A stretch of DNA of 64,000 bases, taken from Rebecca billardiae RCC1528 (lineage: Eukaryota > Protista > Haptophyta). A program made the translations under genes and the position numbers. Of this stretch, positions 2,737-52,310 are shown one piece after another; the stretch's first letter is position 1, and each line of letters starts with the position of its first letter. The stretch spans positions 682,001-746,000 of the forward strand of contig OZ251231.1 of NCBI GenBank assembly GCA_965240325.2, written 5' to 3'. The notes beneath the pieces were generated by a model. That model had not been told where the DNA came from. It saw nothing but the letters and a program-made list of their open reading frames with translations, and did no database searches.

Positions 2737-4716
2737 ATGGCGGCGCTGTGCGTGCATGTGATCTTCGTGCTCCTCGCCCAGCTCGAGCAGGGCCCGCCCC
2801 CACGCGGCAGGCGGCTCTGCAGCGTGGGTCATCTGCCACCGCGCTTCACGCCCGAGCCCGTCGAGGCGCCGGGCGCGCTCGATCGCATCGTGCGCGCGCG
2901 CTCGTTCGAACGCGAGCTCGTTCTGCTCGGCACGGATGGCCACTACGTGCACACGGCGGCGGACACGCTGCGCAACCTGCACGCCGTCGGCGTGGCGCAC
3001 GTGATGACGATCGTCCTCCAGCGCAGCTTGTGCGACGAGCTCGTCGCGCTCTTCGCGCCCGCGGGCTGTGCGTGGTCGACACTGTTCGCCTCGGGCGGTT
3101 CGGGTCATTCTACCTCCGGCCAGCTGCTCGGCAAGGGCTCGGGCGTGGCGCGGCGGCACTACCTGCTGCACTTTGCGCTGGAGGCGCGGCTGAACGTGCT
3201 GCAGCTTGATCTCGACACCGTCTTCTTCGACAACCCGTACGTCGCCCTCCACGCGATCATCCCGCCCGGTGGCGGCGGGCTCGCCTGCCACCCGACCTCG
3301 CAGTCCATAGCCAACGGCGGCTTGCTCTATCTCGCAGGGGCGAGCGAGCGCCCGCTGCTCGCGCGGATGATGCGCGAGTACCTAGCTCGGCTCCGCCGTG
3401 CGCTCGATGACCCGATCGCCGAGGCCGGCCGCGTGCTCAGCGTGCTCGGCGAGATGCACCTCGCGGCGGACGTGCTGCGCGCCGCGCCCAACGGCACCGC
3501 TGCCGTTGGTGGCGGCGGCGGCGCTGACGCTGCTAGCGGCGGCGCGGGCGGGGCGGTGATGTTCTCGGCGGAGGAGCGTGAGTTCATCTCGCGCACGATC
3601 GGCGAGTCGATCGGCAACGAGCAGAACACCGCGCACGAGACCATCGTCTCCGCGATCGTGGGCGACTACGGGCGCGGACTCGCACCCAAGTCGCTGCGCG
3701 CCGCATCGATCGCTGTGGCGACGATTGTCAAGGAGGGTAGGCGCAGCAGGGGCAGGGGCGGCAAGGGGATGGGCGAGGCGCGGATCAAGGCGCTACTCGC
3801 GGAGAGCGAGCGCCTGATCCAGCGCTCCGACGCCGTGCAAAGGCGCTGCTCCGCCGCCCTCCGCAAGCGCCACCAGCCGTACGCGCCCGCCGCTCTGGAC
3901 GGCTACCGCCAGCTGGCGTGCGGCGCCCACGGTCTGCGCGAGGAGCTGCTGCGCCGCCGCGACAGGACGGGGTCGTGGTGGGCGCTCGCGCGGCCGGCGG
4001 ACGAGCGCGGCCCGCCGTGCGACCACGGGTGCGGCGTCATCGCGCTGCTGCCGCGCTGGACCTACACGATGAATAACGAGCTGATCGTGGAGCTCAAGAT
4101 GTGCGCACACGTGAACTGCGGCAGGCGCCGCGCGCCCGCGAACGGCAGGCTGCCAGACCGGCGCCGGCTGCTCGCGAAAGGGAGCGGCGATGGCGCGGCC
4201 TGGTGGCCGCTCGTCGCAGCGCACCACCTGGACAAGGACGAGCACCGGCTGCTCCAGGCGCGCGTGCTCGCGCAGCTCCTCCCGCTGCAGTCGCCCGCCG
4301 ACGAGCTGGCCGCTGCGCCGGTGGCCATCGAGCGCGCGCCCGCGCACGTCCGCGCCCGCTTGCACGGCATCAAGAGCGTGAAAGTGCCGCCCGGGCGGCG
4401 GCCGGCGTGGTCGGTGGCCTTCGACGTGTGCGCGAAGCTGCGCGCCCGCGGGTTCAACGGCACGTACCCTGAGAGCGGCGGCCGGCTCGCCAACTACTCG
4501 CCCGGGTTTGTGAAGGACCATCGTGAGAAGTGGGCGGTGCTGTGCGACTCGGGGCCTGCGGCCACAGCGATGGACGACGCCGCGGCCCGTGGCGACGCCA
4601 CCCCGGTGCGCCGCTCGTATGCGCGGATGCGCGTGACGGCAGGCGAGTCGCGTTGGCTGTCGTGCCTGCCGCGCAGGGTCTGCGAGCTCAGGGGTGGACC
4701 CCGTCGGGAGCTATAG
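2737..4716 (+). CDS. Nucleotide-diphospho-sugar transferase (GT77-like), secretory
   Basis: Hydrophobic N-terminus; LNVLQLDLDTVFFDNPY (DxD) followed by ANGGLLYL and a later EQ motif, typical of Nucleotid_trans. Confidence 0.7.
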   Translation: MAALCVHVIFVLLAQLEQGPPPRGRRLCSVGHLPPRFTPEPVEAPGALDRIVRARSFERELVLLGTDGHYVHTAADTLRNLHAVGVAHVMTIVLQRSLCDELVALFAPAGCAWSTLFASGGSGHSTSGQLLGKGSGVARRHYLLHFALEARLNVLQLDLDTVFFDNPYVALHAIIPPGGGGLACHPTSQSIANGGLLYLAGASERPLLARMMREYLARLRRALDDPIAEAGRVLSVLGEMHLAADVLRAAPNGTAAVGGGGGADAASGGAGGAVMFSAEEREFISRTIGESIGNEQNTAHETIVSAIVGDYGRGLAPKSLRAASIAVATIVKEGRRSRGRGGKGMGEARIKALLAESERLIQRSDAVQRRCSAALRKRHQPYAPAALDGYRQLACGAHGLREELLRRRDRTGSWWALARPADERGPPCDHGCGVIALLPRWTYTMNNELIVELKMCAHVNCGRRRAPANGRLPDRRRLLAKGSGDGAAWWPLVAAHHLDKDEHRLLQARVLAQLLPLQSPADELAAAPVAIERAPAHVRARLHGIKSVKVPPGRRPAWSVAFDVCAKLRARGFNGTYPESGGRLANYSPGFVKDHREKWAVLCDSGPAATAMDDAAARGDATPVRRSYARMRVTAGESRWLSCLPRRVCELRGGPRREL

Positions 4717-5679: not shown

Positions 5680-6003
5680 GTCCCGCCGGCAGTCAGCCTC
5701 GTCCTGATGCAGGTCTGCAGCCGTCTGCTGCGGGAGCCCTGCCCATCACGCCCACTCCGGGCCGCTCCGCGCCGCCCCGTCACGGACACGGATCGCAGCA
5801 CGGGACGACAACGACTTGTACCGCGTACTAGCAGCTTCCGGTCGTACTAGTATGACGCATCACGCAATGTGAGCTGCACCGTCGACCGCTGCTACGTGCC
5901 GCACTCCGTCATCCATTTCATATATGCCGCGCATCATCCCGGTTATGTCGAGCCGCACGGATGACTGGCGGACGAGTGCTGCTGACGATGCTGGTTTAAG
6001 GCA

Positions 6004-7969
6004 TCATCGTGGCGCGCCGTCACAGGCCATCGCCACCTGCACGCGAAACTTCAAGTTGCCGGCGGGTGACGCTGCGGCAAGGCGCTTACCTGCGGCTGCG
6101 TCGTGAGCGTCATCAGCAGCAGAATTGTTGTATGCCGCTGCTGCTGGCCCCTCCGCATGATTCGTACCATCACCCGCCGTCGGAAGCATCAAGTGCTGCC
6201 GCGCGTTGAGCTCAGCAGGCAGCTTGCGCAGCACCTTGGACATCAGCTTCAGACACGAAATCCCGCGCCAATGCTTCACGCGGCCGGAGTACACAGTGGT
6301 GCCGACGACGTTGCGATCGGCAGCATCATCGTCAATCTTGTCACCGCGTCCGCTCCTGCGAGCGCTGGCGGTGCTGTTGGGGCCAGCTCGCGGGTGCATC
6401 GCGAAACTTTCGACTGCCTTCAGCATCTGCGCAGCGACCCACCGTCGCGCGGGCTCGGATGGCGGCGACGTAATCACAACGCCACCGTAAACGTTGGCCA
6501 GGCGCGCACGCGCGAGCTGCTGCACCGCACCAGCCGTGCACGCACCAGACCGGCTCACGTTGGTCGCGCAGAACTGCGCATACCAGTCGAACGCGCCGCG
6601 CTTGGCCCTGCAGTGCATCTCAGTGCCGGTCTTGTCCTTGGCGTGGACTCCGCCGGCGCCGCCGCACTGTGTGAACCACGGTGGCGTGGCGATGTACTCG
6701 CGCCACGACGACGACCGCTGGCGCACGGCCAGCGCATCCTGGCGACTGGCAGTCGTCATCTCCGAAGGCGCTGCGTGTTCGTCGGCCAGCTGCTCGAGCA
6801 CAACAGTGCCGGCTTGCGCGCTGTGCGGCGGCCAAAAGAGCATGGAGTTGATGATGCAGTAGTCCGAGATGAAGACTTGCGAGTCGAGCGGTCTGTGTGA
6901 TTTCGCCTCCTCCCACCAGTAGGCGTTGACCCAGTGTGATTCCGCACAGGCCGAGGGCCACATGGCGGCGGGCGTACGGCACGCGCGATCGACGCGCACC
7001 TGCATGCCACCAGGCGCCGAAGCGTTGGGCACCACGGGCCATCGCACGTGCACGAGCTCGCGAGCCGCGTGCGGGGACAGCACGTAGGCGGTCGCAGAGA
7101 CTGCGCAAGCATGCGCGGAGGGCACGCGGGCACGACCGCAGAACGTGAGCGCACGTGCCAGCACAGGTGACAGGCCACAGGGGCGGAGGCGCGGACGTCC
7201 AGTCTGCCTAACTGTCGGCAACTGCCGGCACCGTCATGGTATCGTAAGAGCGCGCGCTGTCTCACGTACATGGCAGTGGGCTGAGGCCGCATGGTTCTCC
7301 GCCTCGTCCACGGGCGAAAAGGTGCACCTTGTCCAGCACGTGCGGTCGGCCAAGCCGCGCCCAGAGCCGCATGAGCGCCGCCCAGTGCTCCGCCTGCGAG
7401 ACCTTGGTCTCGAGCTGCACGATCGACCAATGCTCGGGCTCGAGCGAGCCAACGAGAGCCCGTATCGAGCTGCCGTGTGCACCGTGCACCTCGCCGGGCG
7501 CATTTGCCGGGTCGTTGGCCGCCAGCACGCCCTGGTAGCCGACCAGTGGCGTGAAGGCTACATCGTCTTCCAGAATCAGGTACGCCGGCGCGCTCGGCTC
7601 GGTGGCGAGCGCAGTCCAAGCAGCCCTGAGATGCGACAGCGTGATGGCGTCCTCGACGGTCGGCGCGTGGCCATCAGCCCAGTAAGCGCCACGCGCAATG
7701 CGTGCCACATCCGAGACGAGCACGCCCGGCACGCGGGTCGCGCACACGCCCGGTGCCAGCAGGGCAGGCAGGCGCGCCTGCATCTTGCGACGCCTACGAC
7801 CAGCAGCATCCATGTTGATCCAGAACGTTGGCACGTCGATACACGTAAGACGTCGGGGCGCAGAGGTCGCTTCAGCGCGAAACTTCGGACCGCACACGCG
7901 GTCCGAGACGCGGTGCCGCCCCGAGACTCCGACGGCCACGATGGTCGCAAGGAGTGATGCCGCCACCAT
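6004..7969 (-). CDS. GT25-like glycosyltransferase, probably two exons (intron roughly 7101-7330)
   Basis: Signal peptide MVAASLLATIV; FWINMD..RRRKMQ, ITLSHLRAW and YLILEDD in ORF 7262-7984; AYVLSPHAARELV in ORF 6004-7221 after a gcgcag acceptor near 7101. Confidence 0.7.
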
Positions 7970-8210: not shown

Positions 8211-8223
8211 AGCCAAAGGAATC

Positions 8224-9777
8224 TCATGCTCGGAAGTCCCACAGCGGGACTTCTTCGAGCTTACAGGATCGCCAGTGAAGACCTCCCGCGCCCCTCGAGA
8301 TCATACGGAGTTGGCGGCGAGATCGCGCTCTTGCGGCGGGCGGCGGGCGGGAGCGCGCGCCGGCGCTCGCTCGCGCGCTCGCTGCCCGCAGCGCGCGCGT
8401 CAGGTCGTCGTGAGCGCTTGCGCGCCGGCGCTAGGGCGCGTGCCACCTGCGCACGCCGCTGGTTCGCGCCTGCGCGCTCTGCTCCGCCGCTGCGGCGCTT
8501 GCGAGCGCTCGCCGTGTCTTGCGCCGGCTCCCGGCCCGCCGCGTCGAAAGCCTGGTTGTGCGGCCAGCCAAGTGTGGCGTTTGCGGCTTGGCGCGCGAGC
8601 GCGCGACGCAGCGGATGGCGCGTGTGAGCCGTCCAGCCAGTGTCACTCGCCTCGTGCGCCGCGCGCCGACCGCGCGCCCCAGATTCGACGACGAGCGCTG
8701 CTCGGTCACGGTGAGACGGGAGTCGGCGCTCCGCATCGCAGAGCCGCGTGTGGTCGCGCAGAAGAGGCCGCGCGTGGCCGGCGCGGCCGCTTTGTGCCGT
8801 GGTCTAGGCTTCAATCGCGTCCGCAGTCGGTGAGAACGCATGCCTCGCCCACGAGGTCACTCATCTTCTGCCCGTACACAGCGCGTGACACGTGAGGTGG
8901 ATTCCAGAAGGTGTCTCGAGGTCACGCCGTCACCGATCGTAGCCACATAAGCCATTGCGTGGAAGAGCTGCGCTCACGGAGATCGTGCACGTGTCATCAG
9001 CGCGCTACCAGACCATAACCATCGAGTTCTTGAAGCCGTATACCAATGGAGTAGGATGGCTGGATGGGTTTGTTCGAGCCCACGGCTGGCGGCACGAGTG
9101 ATACGGCCCGGCACGCAGAGTCAGGTCAAGTCGCCCACTCGTGAGTGCGGCGTGACCGCTTGGGCAAGGCAAGCAACTGCGGACGCGATTGAAGCCTAGA
9201 CCACGGCACAAAGCGGCCGCGCCGGCCACGCGCGGCCTCTTCTGCGCGACCACACGCGGCTCTGCGATGCGGAGCGCCGACTCCCGTCTCACCGTGACCG
9301 AGCAGCGCTCGTCGTCGAATCTGGGGCGCGCGGTCGGCGCGCGGCGCACGAGGCGAGTGACGCTGGCTGGACGGCTCACACGCGCCATCCGCTGCGTCGC
9401 GCGCTCGCGCGCCAAGCCGCAAACGCCACACTTGGCTGGCCGCACAACCAGGCTTTCGACGCGGCGGGCCGGAACCGGCGCAAGACACGGCGAGCGCTCG
9501 CAAGCGCCGCAGCGGCGGAGCAGAGCGCGCAGGCGCGAACCAGCGGCGTGCGCAGGTGGCACGCGCCCTAGCGCCGGTGCGCAAGCGCTCACGACGACCT
9601 GACGCGCGCGCTGCGGGCAGCGAGCGCGCGAGCGAGCGCCGGCGCGCGCTCCCGCCCGCCGCCGCCGCAAGAGCGCGATCTCGCCGCCAACTCCGTATGA
9701 TCTCGAGGGGCGCGGGAGGTTTTCACTGGCGATCCTGTAAGCTCGGAGAAGTCCCGCTGTGGGACTTCCGAGCATGA
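8224..9777. mobile_element. Non-autonomous foldback DNA transposon, ~600-bp TIRs, 4-bp TSD AATC
   Basis: Arms 8224-8827 and 9176-9777 are reverse complements with few differences; ends TCATGCTCGG...CCGAGCATGA; AATC at 8220-8223 and 9778-9781. Confidence 0.85.
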
Positions 9778-9901
9778 AATCAAGGGCTGGAGCCTGGACA
9801 GCTAGAGGTTTCGGCCGCATTCCTCCGAAGCGAAACCGGATGACGTCAGCCCCTGAGGCTGCTGAGAAGACTTTTCGAAGCCGCGGCGCGGTGAGCTGGC
9901 G

Positions 9902-47250: not shown

Positions 47251-49091
47251 CTAGCTACTTTTAACACTATTATCTAGGCGAAGAGTACTCTCTAAGACCG
47301 AGGCTACAAGTTTGTCTGACTACTGTTAGCTCACCGGACGCAGATAATCAATCAAATCGGCATAATATCGGCGTCACGGCGCGGAGGGCGCCGGAGAGAG
47401 CTGCGGAGCCGTCCGCGACGGCCCCGGGCCCGCGGTCCACGGACTAGCAGGCAGAGTGGCGGCAACACTGACCAATCGTAGAAATACCATACGGGTCAAC
47501 TGCACAGATCATCGAGGGGGTCGCGACGGCTCGTAAGCGGACGAGCATGAGCACCAGCTGGGGGTCGCCGCGACGGCGCACGATGCCTTTGCTGAATTCA
47601 CCCGGTCGCGGGACACCGTTCGTCTGCGCACGCGCCAGGACGCGCTTCTCGCCGTCTTCGCCTTGTTTCATGAGTGCCGCGCACACGACTGAACGCCAGC
47701 GTTTCAAGCCTTAAGAGGCCAGACGCGTGCGCAGACTCAGAGGAAGGGCAGACTCCGAGGGCAAGCGCGCAACGTGGGTAAGTCGCAGAGCAACCGTCCA
47801 AGCTGTTTTACATGTTTTCTTCGTGCGCGCGTCTCTGAGCTCGATTCTCATGCCTCAGCCAGTGCTAGGGTCCATTGGACAGGCCGCCAGCCCGCCAAGC
47901 GCAACGCGGAGACGGGCGCGCCGCGCAGAAAGCGTGCTGCGGGCGCCGGGGCCGCTCGGCCGCACGCCTATGTAGTATTAATCATCAAGGCGGCTGTATT
48001 TCGTCATGCAACTTTAATTGAACTTATTCTGGAAACCCACGAGAACAAAGGCACGACTTCACGCTGGGGACCAGCCCGTCGCGGGCCTTTATTTGACGCC
48101 CACTCACGTGTCGGTCACATAAGCGCAATTCGCGTACCCGCTTACGCGCGCGATAGGGCAAAAGCCGCTCGTCGTTCAGTCAAAAACCGCTCGTCGTTCG
48201 GCGCTTTGCGTGCTCACATTCGCGCGAATCGCATCGGCCCATTATTCGTCGTGTCGCGAGTTCACACATTTCACGAGCGAAAGGGCGCGTTGATAGAGGC
48301 ACGCGGGTATCATCTTGCATTGGACTACGAGCATCGGAGCAACCTCGCGCGGCCTCGCGTCGACGACGTCCCGTGAAGGACGCCACGACGACAGGCGGGT
48401 GAGCCCACTGCGGCGCCAAGCGAGCGACGCGGGGCGCGCGGCGGGCGCACGCGCGAGGCTGCCCACCACGCGCACGCGCGCGAACCCGCCGGCTCGGGCG
48501 ACACGCGCCGCCTCAGCTCGAGCACGAGCGCGAGGCGTGGCGCCGGCTCGCCGTGGCGGCGGAGGGCTCGACCTGCATTGCGCGCGACGAGCGGCTCGCC
48601 TGCGGTGCCAGCGGATGAAGCGGCAAGCCCGGCGGGCGCATACGCGCAGGTCCGCCCTCCACGCGCGAGCGCGCGACTGCGTGTTCCACGAGCTGCAGCA
48701 GGCGGCCGCGGGCTGGTCGGCGGCCGGCGAGGTCGGCGGAGTGCCGCCCGGCCCGCGTTCTCGCTTGGGCGCGGGCCACACTCTCACTCACAGCGCGGGG
48801 CGTGGTGCTGCAGACGGGCCGGTCATTGCAGCGCGCACTCCGTGGTCAGACGTGCACACGCGCGCGCGTCGTCAGCCCCGCCGCTGCGCCCCTGTGGCGC
48901 CCTTGGCAGCGTCGGAATTCCGAGCTCGAAGCCACCGGCCGCGAGCTGCCATCGTGCGTTTCAGAAACAGGTTTCCAGCCCAAGTTGACGCGCAGCGCCA
49001 ACCCATATTGGATTCTCCGATTCTCCGCCCCCAGCTGCAGCTGGGCAAGGCCGAGCCGAGCGAGCGGGAGGGGTTGCTCAGCCCTGCAACC

Positions 49092-51794
49092 TCAGCCGAG
49101 AGAGGTGGCATTGCCACCTCTCGCGCGAGTTGGGGAAACGTTGAGTTCCCGAGTTTTTACACGGGGCGGCAATTTCTGGCGCGCGCAATCTTCCGATTTT
49201 AAGGCGGTGGGTGGCGCCGCCGCCGTCGCGCTCTCGACGCGCGCGAGCTGCGCGCGCGCGGCGGCGGTTTTGGCCGCGCGGCACTGGGCCGGCTGGGTCC
49301 GCGCGGCCGAGGAGGCCACTCTTGCCGCGGTGGTCGTGGCGCGGGGACGTCCCCGCCGCTCGCCAACCTCCCGCGAGCGCCTCGCGCCGCCTCGCGCCGC
49401 CTTCACGCCATCTCCGCGCGCCAACTGCACGCTCTGGACGCCTCGGCGGCAGAGCCGCGCGCGGCGCGGTTGTGTGCCGTGTAGACTGGGCCCATGCGCG
49501 TCCGCTGTCGGTGCGCCCCGGCCACGCACGCGCGCAGCCCAGACCTCTCGCCTCACGCGTCGCCGCCGAGCGCGGCTGTGCACCTCAGTCTGCCGTGGTG
49601 CCGCGCGCGCGGCCGAGCGAGCAGGCGGCGCGTTGTGGAGCGTGTGACGCACGAGACGGGAAGGCGTCCGAGCGTCCGAGCCACCGCCGACCGGCGGCGC
49701 GCACGCGATTGGCTTGAGCCATCGGCGCCGACGGCGCGCGCGCGCTGAGCCAGCTGAAGGCTTGTGCGCCATGGCACGGCAGCCGCCAATCGCGGCCTGC
49801 GGCCGTACTGTGCGGCAGGCGCGCTCGGTGCGGGCGCTTCGGGGCGTGGCCTCACGAGACCGGAGCCCCTGGAAGCGCGACGCCTATGAGCTCGCCCCGG
49901 CCTGAGTGAGCGCGCATCTGTCAGTGATCGGCACACGCAGCAGCACGGGGTGGCCGTCGTCATGAGCCATGGCCTTGACACGGCCGCGCTGAGCGCGCCA
50001 CGACACACCGCACGGCGCCGCGTGAAGAGTAGATGTATGACCCCCGGCACTTACCTTGGCCCGTGTGCTCTTGCGCGCACGCACGCGAGCACTCGCATGC
50101 TGCCGCGCACCTGCCTCAACGCGTTTCATCTGAGCGTCTGTCCGATGCCAGCCACGTGCTTCCATTGACAGAGAGAGTGACTATACCAGTCAGAAGTCGT
50201 AATCCTCCAGTTGAACCGCACAGTTCCATGGTTGCAGTGCTGCTGGTCCGCTGACTCCGAGGTGGGCGCGCCACGGCAGCTCTCTCTCTCACGGCGCACG
50301 GTCCTTGTGCGCCGGGAGCAGCCGCGTCTGCGCAGACCGACTGCTTACCAGGAAGTTTGAGACTGTATCTCCTTCCATCCCAGCTGCTGCAACGTCTACC
50401 ACGGCTGGTAGCCTGCTGACCCAGACGACCAGCGAGCAAGTATGTCTCCTCGGTGAGCGCGAGCGAGCGCTGCTGCTGACACTCGATTCGTGCGCACACG
50501 CGCCCGCCCGACGCACTCTCACGTTGGCCCGAGGTGGCGTGTGCGCGCGCCCACGCGCGATGATGCCAACTGCTGCTCAGGTCATCCGACTACATGGGCT
50601 GAATAGTGGGTCGTGCTACCTGGCCGCGCGGCGCTCGAAGCTCGCGTTTCTGGCTGACACGAGCGCTTCAAGGTGTCAGCGTAGGTGAAGGGTGGGATAC
50701 TGGGATCCCAGCCTTCTGCCGGTACGGAGACAGCGCACACGCACGCGTGGCGCCTGCGCCGCCGGCCATCGCACACAGCCCTGCTGAATGGTCTCGCATG
50801 CGCCAGCATGACCGTGCACGCCTAGCGCCGCACCATGCAGGTGAGAACTTCAAAAGTGCGCATGCTCGCTTGTTCTTTGTGCCTGGTCGACACCCAGCGT
50901 GGGAGCGCTCAGCGCGGAGCTCATGACGACGGCCACCCCGTGCTGCTGCGTGTGCCGATCACTGACAGATGCGCGCTCACTCAGGCCGGGGCGAGCTCAT
51001 AGGCGTCGCGCTTCCAGGGGCTCCGGTCTCGTGAGGCCACGCCCCGAAGCGCCCGCACCGAGCGCGCCTGCCGCACAGTACGGCCGCAGGCCGCGATTGG
51101 CGGCTGCCGTGCCATGGCGCACAAGCCTTCAGCTGGCTCAGCGCGCGCGCGCCGTCGGCGCCGATGGCTCAAGCCAATCGCGTGCGCGCCGCCGGTCGGC
51201 GGTGGCTCGGACGCTCGGACGCCTTCCCGTCTCGTGCGTCACACGCTCCACAACGCGCCGCCTGCTCGCTCGGCCGCGCGCGCGGCACCACGGCAGACTG
51301 AGGTGCACAGCCGTGCTCGGCGGCGACGCGTGAGGCGAGAGGTCTGGGCTGCGCGCGTGCGTGGCCGGGGCGCACCGACAGCGGACGCGCATGGGCCCAG
51401 TCTACACGGCACACAACCGCGCCGCGAGCGGCTCTGCCGCCGAGGCGTCCAGAGCGTGCAGTTGGCGCGCGGAGATGGCGTGAAGGCGGCGCGAGGCGGC
51501 GCGAGGCGCTCGCGGGAGGTTGGCGAGCGGCGGGGACGTCCCCGCGCCACGACCACCGCGGCAAGAGTGGCCTCCTCGGCCGTGCGGACCCAGCCGGCCC
51601 AGTGCCGCGCGGCCAAAACCGCCGCCGCGCGCGCGCAGCTCGCGCGCGTCGAGAGCGCGACGGCGGCGGCGCCACCCACCGCCTTAAAATCGGAAGATTG
51701 CGCGCGCCAGAAATTGCCGCCCCGTGTAAAAACTCGGGAACTCAACGTTTCCCCAACTCGCGCGAGAGGTGGCAATGCCACCTCTCTCGGCTGA
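49092..51794. mobile_element. Non-autonomous foldback DNA transposon, ~876-bp TIRs, 4-bp TSD AACC
   Basis: Arms 49092-49967 and 50919-51794 are near-identical reverse complements; ends TCAGCCGAG...CTCGGCTGA; AACC at 49088-49091 and 51795-51798. Confidence 0.9.
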
Positions 51795-52310
51795 AACCGC
51801 CTCTGACCTTGGGCAGCAGCCATACATGCAGGCCAGCATGAGCGGCGGGGTGGCATCAGAGCCGGCCCCGGCCCGCAAACGCAAACAGCCGGACGCCCCG
51901 GCCCACACAGCTGATGCGCCAGCAAACCCTGCTCCGGGCCACAGAACCCTGCCGCCGGCTTTGAGGCCGACACGCCACACTGGGGCACATATCACCTGAG
52001 GGCCGGGCCTTCTGTGTGATAAGCTACCCCAGTCATGCCGCTTGATACACACCTTCCCCAACTGACAGTGGGGCTCTACATTCCCTACTACATCCTCATC
52101 CTGTCGGCGCGCTGTCGCATCGGCGCCCAGTCGGCGAGTTCGGACGACGACGTTTTGTGGACGACGGTGGGGCGAGGACGACGGGCGCTGGCGCGCCGCG
52201 AGGCGGCCGCAGCCCTCATCCAGGCCTCGCAGGCGGACGGCTGAACGAATTTTTCCGGCGGCGCTACCATCGGCGACGGCTTCATGGGCGGTGACAGTTG
52301 GCGGGCGTCA

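Follow-up and report, generated by a model that had tools for sequence, protein, structure and literature searches.

Long-armed foldback transposons of the haptophyte Rebecca billardiae combine TCA tips with non-TTAA 4-bp target-site duplications and are probably moved by a divergent piggyBac lineage

The stretch of DNA studied here, which we refer to as the window, comprises 64,000 nucleotides from Rebecca billardiae RCC1528 (C14:682001-746000; genome of 72 Mb in 41 contigs with a GC content of about 68%). At positions 8224-9777 it carries a real, recently active, non-coding foldback transposon, element 1. We judge it probable that a divergent piggyBac lineage, no longer specific for TTAA, moves this element and the other foldback families described below, which would be its non-autonomous derivatives.

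Results

Anatomy of element 1

Element 1 is a foldback of 1554 bp with inverted arms of 604 and 602 bp, 98.8% alike overall and composed of three contiguous blocks with complementarities of 100%, 98%, and 97%, around a spacer of 348 bp. Its tips are TCATGCTCGG...CCGAGCATGA (TCA...TGA), and a palindrome begins four bases inside each of them. Folded as single-stranded DNA, the palindrome at 8228-8260 reaches -12.8 kcal/mol, compared with -4.0 +/- 1.6 kcal/mol for shuffled sequences (z = -5.6), and none of 200 shuffles was as stable. No Pfam match was obtained for any of the seven longest open reading frames overlapping the element, nor did tblastn detect piggyBac-like coding content in it. These data bear out an earlier note on this DNA, which had described terminal inverted repeats of about 600 bp around a spacer of about 350 bp devoid of recognizable coding content, an exact AATC duplication, and a subterminal hairpin. 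The features of element 1 are as follows (window coordinates).

8220..8223, no strand: left target-site duplication AATC, same as 9778-9781; other tetranucleotides in other copies
8224..8827, + strand: left arm, terminal inverted repeat of 604 bp with TCA start; its terminal 30 bp are invariant in 14/14 genomic copies
8228..8260, no strand: subterminal palindrome with 5-bp and 8-bp stems around ACAGC; putative binding site of a dimer of the transposase Cys-rich domain
8828..9175, no strand: spacer, unique, 348 bp, non-coding; part 8866-9027 matches C11:1415500-1415656 (91%)
9176..9777, - strand: right arm of 602 bp with TGA end, inverted copy of the left arm
9741..9773, no strand: subterminal palindrome, mirror copy of 8228-8260
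9778..9781, no strand: right target-site duplication AATC, same as 8220-8223

The 160-bp piece of the spacer matches a single other locus (L045:5001-5157 in our set of extracted loci); this homologue was checked for traces of a parent element and gave no transposase.

Genomic copies of family 1 and of its sister family 1b

A DNA search of the genome recovered 14 copies of family 1, all of them with exactly the same terminal 30 bp. Thirteen copies have both flanks, and each of these 13 is bordered by a perfect 4-bp duplication that differs from site to site; the fifth base beyond it does not match. Identical tips in 14 copies and perfect, differing duplications in 13 of 13 insertions demonstrate that element 1 is mobile and is not a chance repeat. 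The copies form three young groups and a singleton, with identities of 99.4-100%, 98.2-99.3%, and 99.7-99.9% within the groups and of 95-96% between them, a pattern that implies successive bursts of transposition. One of the 13 copies with both flanks is interrupted by a 3.4-kb transposon of an unrelated family (L044:3817-7195; C5:1763816-1767194), which has the ends CAGCGCTAAA...TTTAGCGCTG, inner inverted arms (3824-4163 and 5890-6166), and GC-rich tandem repeats of 18 bp.

A sister family, 1b, is represented by four full copies and two solo ends. Its body is 76-78% identical to that of family 1, while its first approximately 35 bp, with the tip TCATAACGGAGAGG, are different; the duplications TATC, GATT, and AACT found at its insertions are perfect. 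The family 1b copy at C25:1241866-1245180 (partly in L016) measures 3.3 kb, as approximately 1.75 kb with the end CCCTTG is inserted past base ~17 of its left tip. Furthermore, at least 10 loci contain inverted pairs of 160-bp matches with 72% identity to positions 135-293 of the family 1 arm, the members of a pair being separated by about 2.5 kb; examples are C8:1085826/1088341, C25:1291645/1294207, C16:2040446/2042966, C10:65956/68490, and C5:3609789/3612323. These pairs are probably another foldback family that shares a piece of the family 1 arm.

A second foldback in the window and its relatives

The earlier note had also pointed to an element at 49092-51794 with the same architecture, and this proved correct: element 2 consists of two 876-bp arms around a spacer of 951 bp, framed by an AACC duplication.

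49088..49091, no strand: left target-site duplication AACC
49092..49967, + strand: left arm of 876 bp with the tip TCAGCC; contains a perfect 23-bp palindrome at 49100-49122 (z = -4.3)
49968..50918, no strand: spacer of 951 bp, no recognizable coding content; part 50371-50698 is akin to a dispersed repeat
50919..51794, - strand: right arm of 876 bp with the end GGCTGA
51795..51798, no strand: right target-site duplication AACC

Family 2, to which this 2.7-kb element belongs, has eight copies that are 99-100% alike, and perfect duplications border all seven intact ones. Retrieving the copies by their tips and tabulating their duplications, as the earlier note had proposed, hence yielded consistent 4-bp duplications for family 1 and family 2 alike. 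A 3.1-kb relative, family 2b, is 85-90% identical to family 2 and is present in at least seven copies. It retains the outer half-sites GAGGTG/CACCTC of the family 2 palindrome; its inner seven bases are swapped and are still palindromic, two of its three inner pairs being altered on both sides. This compensatory change fits a binding site for a dimeric protein and an intrastrand hairpin equally well.

The spacer of element 2 seems to include a captured fragment of another repeat. Its segment 50371-50698 has at least 12 dispersed relatives with identities of 72-84%; among these, three copies on C1 (L046) are spaced 3.57 kb apart (1429883, 1433448, 1437031), and another one (L047:4857-5195) is flanked by direct repeats 7.9 kb apart in an LTR-like manner. 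Examined likewise for a parent element, these homologues led to a dispersed repeat and to no transposase. A further repeat also includes the family 2 palindrome of 23 bp (GAGAGGTGGCA-T-TGCCACCTCTC), its context there being TTAGCAGAGAGAGG...CTCGGCTGC (C16:1244803, C16:2346763, C27:23339, C1:5073510, C12:7584, and C13:2804584; several of these sites are no more than about 25 kb away from a contig end). In this repeat, the palindrome may be a common protein-binding site or part of a subtelomeric repeat.

Among the copies recovered with 30-31-bp tip patterns, namely 14 of family 1 and eight of family 2, all non-coding, plus solo and decayed ends, there were no longer elements with the same tips, and we found no element that combines a transposase gene with the arms or tips of family 1 or 2. 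Solo arms on C20 have neither an inverted partner nor piggyBac-like coding content.

Shared end structure and target preference

The earlier note had seen no sequence similarity between the arms of elements 1 and 2. This view holds for the arms themselves, which are unrelated, but not for the TCA tips, the nearby palindrome, and the target preference, which the two have in common. All foldback families begin with TCA, possess arms of 600-880 bp, and carry a palindrome approximately 5-40 bp from the tip (z-scores of -3 to -5.6). Furthermore, a perfect 4-bp duplication was present at all 23 intact insertions examined from three families (1, 1b, and 2), none of which reads TTAA. Reading the element ends in a shifted frame yields no consistent duplication. 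The base composition of the 23 duplications is as follows.

Position 1: A 18, G 4, T 1
Position 2: A 18, C 2, G 2, T 1
Position 3: T 10, G 8, C 3, A 2
Position 4: T 15, C 8

A cytosine precedes the duplication in 13 of these cases and a guanine follows it in 12, so that the symmetrized target consensus is c|AATT|g. Given the bias toward A or G at position 1 and toward T or C at position 4 in a genome with a GC content of about 68%, target choice is strongly non-random; a palindromic, AT-rich target in such GC-rich DNA is what one would expect for a dimeric enzyme.

Resident piggyBac-type genes and their boundaries

Searching the genome with the Pfam model PF13843 (DDE_Tnp_1_7) returned three loci, two copies of a gene that we call PB-A and a single PB-B gene. 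The PB-A copies, located on C37 and C19 (L053, L055), are 99.8% identical to each other, from which we conclude that PB-A has been recently active. The gene contains at least three exons, and the core of its product scores 74 bits against a PF13843 cut-off of 22.4. PB-B, on C1, encodes a protein 47% identical to PB-A. Both proteins have kept the DDD motifs (LDEAM, ADSWF, and VDRFD in PB-A) and a Cys-rich C-terminus, and their sole match among solved structures is the T. ni piggyBac transposase (6x67).

Homology between the PB-A copies starts exactly at TCACAACGGATCC, and the unrelated flanks in front of it end in TATC and AAAC, respectively; the 28-bp terminus is present at a third site on C15. 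The first 10 bp of PB-A match the family 1b tip TCATAACGGA at nine of ten positions and are followed by a 10-bp palindrome, ACGGATCCGT; past these 10 bp, PB-A and the foldback arms have nothing in common. The palindromes near the tips of PB-A and PB-B (z-scores of -2.5 and -1.9) are weaker than those of the foldbacks. No inverted 28-mer or 14-mer of the PB-A tip was detected near the PB-A copies, which therefore either have asymmetric ends or are truncated; a Logan contig lengthens PB-A by 310 bp only. On the 5' side of PB-A, the sequence read extends to C37:613504 and C19:843536 and does not reach the second end of the element. PB-A was considered as the parent of family 1b and dismissed, since no family 1b tip lies near its copies. 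A sequence one base off the PB-A tip, TCGCAACGGATCCG, occurs at approximately 40 sites on both strands (e.g., C14:1632991, C14:2035773, and C14:2156632), never as nearby inverted pairs, and may represent one terminus of an abundant element whose ends are asymmetric.

The PB-B locus (C1:2179888-2185406; L054) is itself a 5.5-kb foldback in which a piggyBac-like gene has its 3' 1.39 kb repeated in inverted orientation: the arm L054:114-1500 is approximately 100% identical to the inverted copy at C1:2184020-2185406, and a second, partial transposase copy faces the first. The inverted arm starts exactly at TCATTATCC. The composite lacks a duplication, its left flank being TTGA and its right flank different, and L054:21, tried as a candidate for the PB-B tip, proved to be single-copy. 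Hence, both definable piggyBac-like boundaries, one each for PB-A and PB-B, start with TCA, a coincidence with an estimated chance of approximately (1/64)^2.

Relatives of the transposases in other organisms

A word-based search found three to five proteins; an exhaustive one found 1349 piggyBac-like representatives, of which five had E < 1e-30 and none exceeded 43% identity over a long stretch. Apart from one fragment with 39%, the nearest database relatives are 25-36% identical to the PB transposases. Around the genes of these relatives, no convincing inverted ends were detected on six contigs, five of them metagenome or read-assembly contigs of 2.4-4.6 kb and the sixth, with a distant relative, of 2.9 Mb. 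One metagenomic relative of PB-A, the 937-aa protein P0011 (L059, a contig of JGI 3300060725), carries an N-terminal RNase_T domain (DEDDh exonuclease, E = 4.5e-13) in addition to its piggyBac transposase domain; we know of no description of such a fusion. The long N-terminal extension of PB-A showed no similarity to this exonuclease domain in Pfam and BLASTP comparisons. PiggyBac families are also present in another haptophyte, for which the report gives neither end nor target data (PMC5963040).

Discussion

Judged by their tips and by the sequence of their duplications, the features by which non-autonomous elements are assigned to a superfamily (MER75/MER85-type MITEs, for instance, are non-autonomous piggyBac derivatives), the R. 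billardiae foldbacks are not canonical piggyBac elements. Their target is A-A-N-T-like (0/23 TTAA) rather than the near-universal TTAA, their tips read TCA rather than C-C/A/T-C/A/T (CCC / CCY), and their arms extend over 600-880 bp instead of 12-19 bp. The PB transposases, too, are distant from their database relatives, at least one of which bears the N-terminal RNase_T exonuclease domain. A survey covering 157 piggyBac-like elements names TTAA and the conserved C at the first position as common features, the rare exceptions being single mutated copies (PMC5381638). With these hallmarks absent, the statement of the earlier note that TCA ends and non-TTAA targets fit no canonical signature can be upheld.

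Judged instead by the length of the duplication, the palindrome near the tip, and the matching ends of the resident piggyBac genes, the foldbacks most likely share the mechanism of piggyBac and depend on it for their movement. They share with this superfamily the 4-bp duplication, and the same genome encodes a DDD transposase (PF13843) whose C-terminal domain is Cys-rich; the palindrome close to the foldback tip recalls the 19-bp internal repeat of piggyBac that is bound by a dimer of this domain, and the chemistry would predict seamless excision in both cases. In the piggyBac structures, the 4-bp offset is dictated by the geometry of the active site, hairpin formation uses the four flanking nucleotides, and a palindromic repeat of 19 bp, located at bp 17-33 of the end, is bound by the two Cys-rich C-terminal domains in dimeric form (PMC7351741). 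With a fixed 4-bp duplication and a palindrome inside each tip, the anatomy of the foldbacks matches these structures. The proposal in the earlier note of an uncharacterized DNA transposon group thus stands insofar as no canonical signature fits, but the definable boundaries of the resident piggyBac-family genes (PF13843) start with TCA as well, and it is most likely more accurate to regard the foldbacks as a divergent offshoot of a superfamily already known than as a new group. The link to these genes is an indirect one, as none of the coding copies carries the foldback arms.

These considerations lend themselves to a simple model for the movement of the foldbacks. A divergent DDD transposase of the piggyBac family, encoded elsewhere in the genome, would mobilize them in trans; we infer cross-mobilization by PB-A, by PB-B, or by an unassembled relative. 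A dimer of this enzyme would recognize the TCA tips, while its C-terminal Cys-rich domains would occupy the subterminal palindrome in dimeric form, as they do in T. ni piggyBac. The enzyme would make the 4-nt staggered cuts that characterize its family and would integrate the elements at A-A-N-T-like sites (c|AATT|g) instead of TTAA. Excision would then leave complementary 4-nt overhangs, one from each copy of the duplication, and as such overhangs are complementary for any tetranucleotide, seamless repair should outlast the loss of TTAA targeting. The foldback build, in which one end is duplicated in inverted orientation, would provide the same binding sites at both tips. How foldbacks of this kind can arise is illustrated by the PB-B locus, where inverted copies of the 3' end of the transposase gene, 1.39 kb each, flank that gene.

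We have weighed three other explanations against this model. Template switching or misassembly can produce long and near-perfect inverted repeats, so that the structure might in principle be a locally inverted duplication or an error of the assembly, and no transposon at all; 14 and eight dispersed copies on many contigs, with the same tips, unrelated flanks, and a perfect 4-bp duplication of their own at each site, render this extremely improbable. Membership of the foldbacks in another known superfamily with 4-bp duplications, in which case the piggyBac-like genes would have TCA ends by mere coincidence, is unlikely as well. The main candidate here is Sola, for which Bao et al. are said to have reported in 2009 4-bp duplications along with termini and targets that are specific to each group; no autonomous piggyBac copy with foldback arms was found. 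Sola has no Pfam model (PMC5751038). Such a coincidence would, however, have to extend to TCA at both of the independently defined piggyBac-like boundaries and to the 9/10 match between the tips of PB-A and family 1b. Ginger and Chapaev-type elements are less likely sources than Sola, as Ginger ends in TGT...ACA and Chapaev, like CACTA, in CAC.

Quite doubtful as well is the idea that a transposase family not yet described moves the foldbacks. An end and target signature unlike that of any described superfamily would speak for it, as would the lack of a coding partner with the same arms among the 14 and eight copies. Yet, a known family with matching TCA ends and recent activity, as indicated by the 99.8% identity of the PB-A copies, is sufficient to account for the data, and the 4-bp stagger is exactly the one made by the piggyBac family. 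We therefore continue to favor mobilization by a divergent piggyBac lineage.

Among other systems with comparable features, the FB element of Drosophila and Galileo (P superfamily) are likewise non-coding, have very long inverted arms around a short unique spacer, and are mobilized in trans. However, FB makes duplications of 9 bp and Galileo of 7 bp, and both have other termini, whereas the families related to element 1 strictly produce 4-bp duplications. A Helitron origin (5'-TC, 3' hairpin, no terminal inverted repeats, no duplication) was rejected, as the foldbacks are symmetric, have long arms, and duplicate 4 bp of target DNA. The domesticated piggyBac transposases of ciliates, PiggyMac and Tpb2, cut with a 4-nt stagger at sites other than TTAA. 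These are immobile host genes that serve programmed DNA elimination, whereas the foldbacks described here transpose and create duplications. PiggyMac is treated in PMC3408717.

Taken as a whole, our data give a slightly better than even chance to a picture that goes beyond the movement of individual foldbacks: an active natural branch of piggyBac in a haptophyte-type alga that has abandoned TTAA, uses TCA tips and loose A-A-N-T targets, has spawned several foldback families with paired palindromes as its binding sites, and has relatives equipped with an exonuclease domain. TTAA targeting is regarded as the hallmark by which piggyBac is known, and it is this targeting that chiefly limits its use as a vector for genome engineering. 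The prediction from the structural account of piggyBac transposition is that neither the 4-nt stagger nor seamless excision depends on the TTAA sequence (PMC7351741). If our interpretation is true, a lineage that has kept the stagger and uses many tetranucleotides would allow a direct test of this prediction, and it might be a source of enzymes with relaxed or altered target choice. The compensatory change in the palindrome between sister families offers a handle on the co-evolution of transposase and transposon ends. For genome annotation, it follows that transposable element classifiers requiring TTAA will miss these abundant algal elements.
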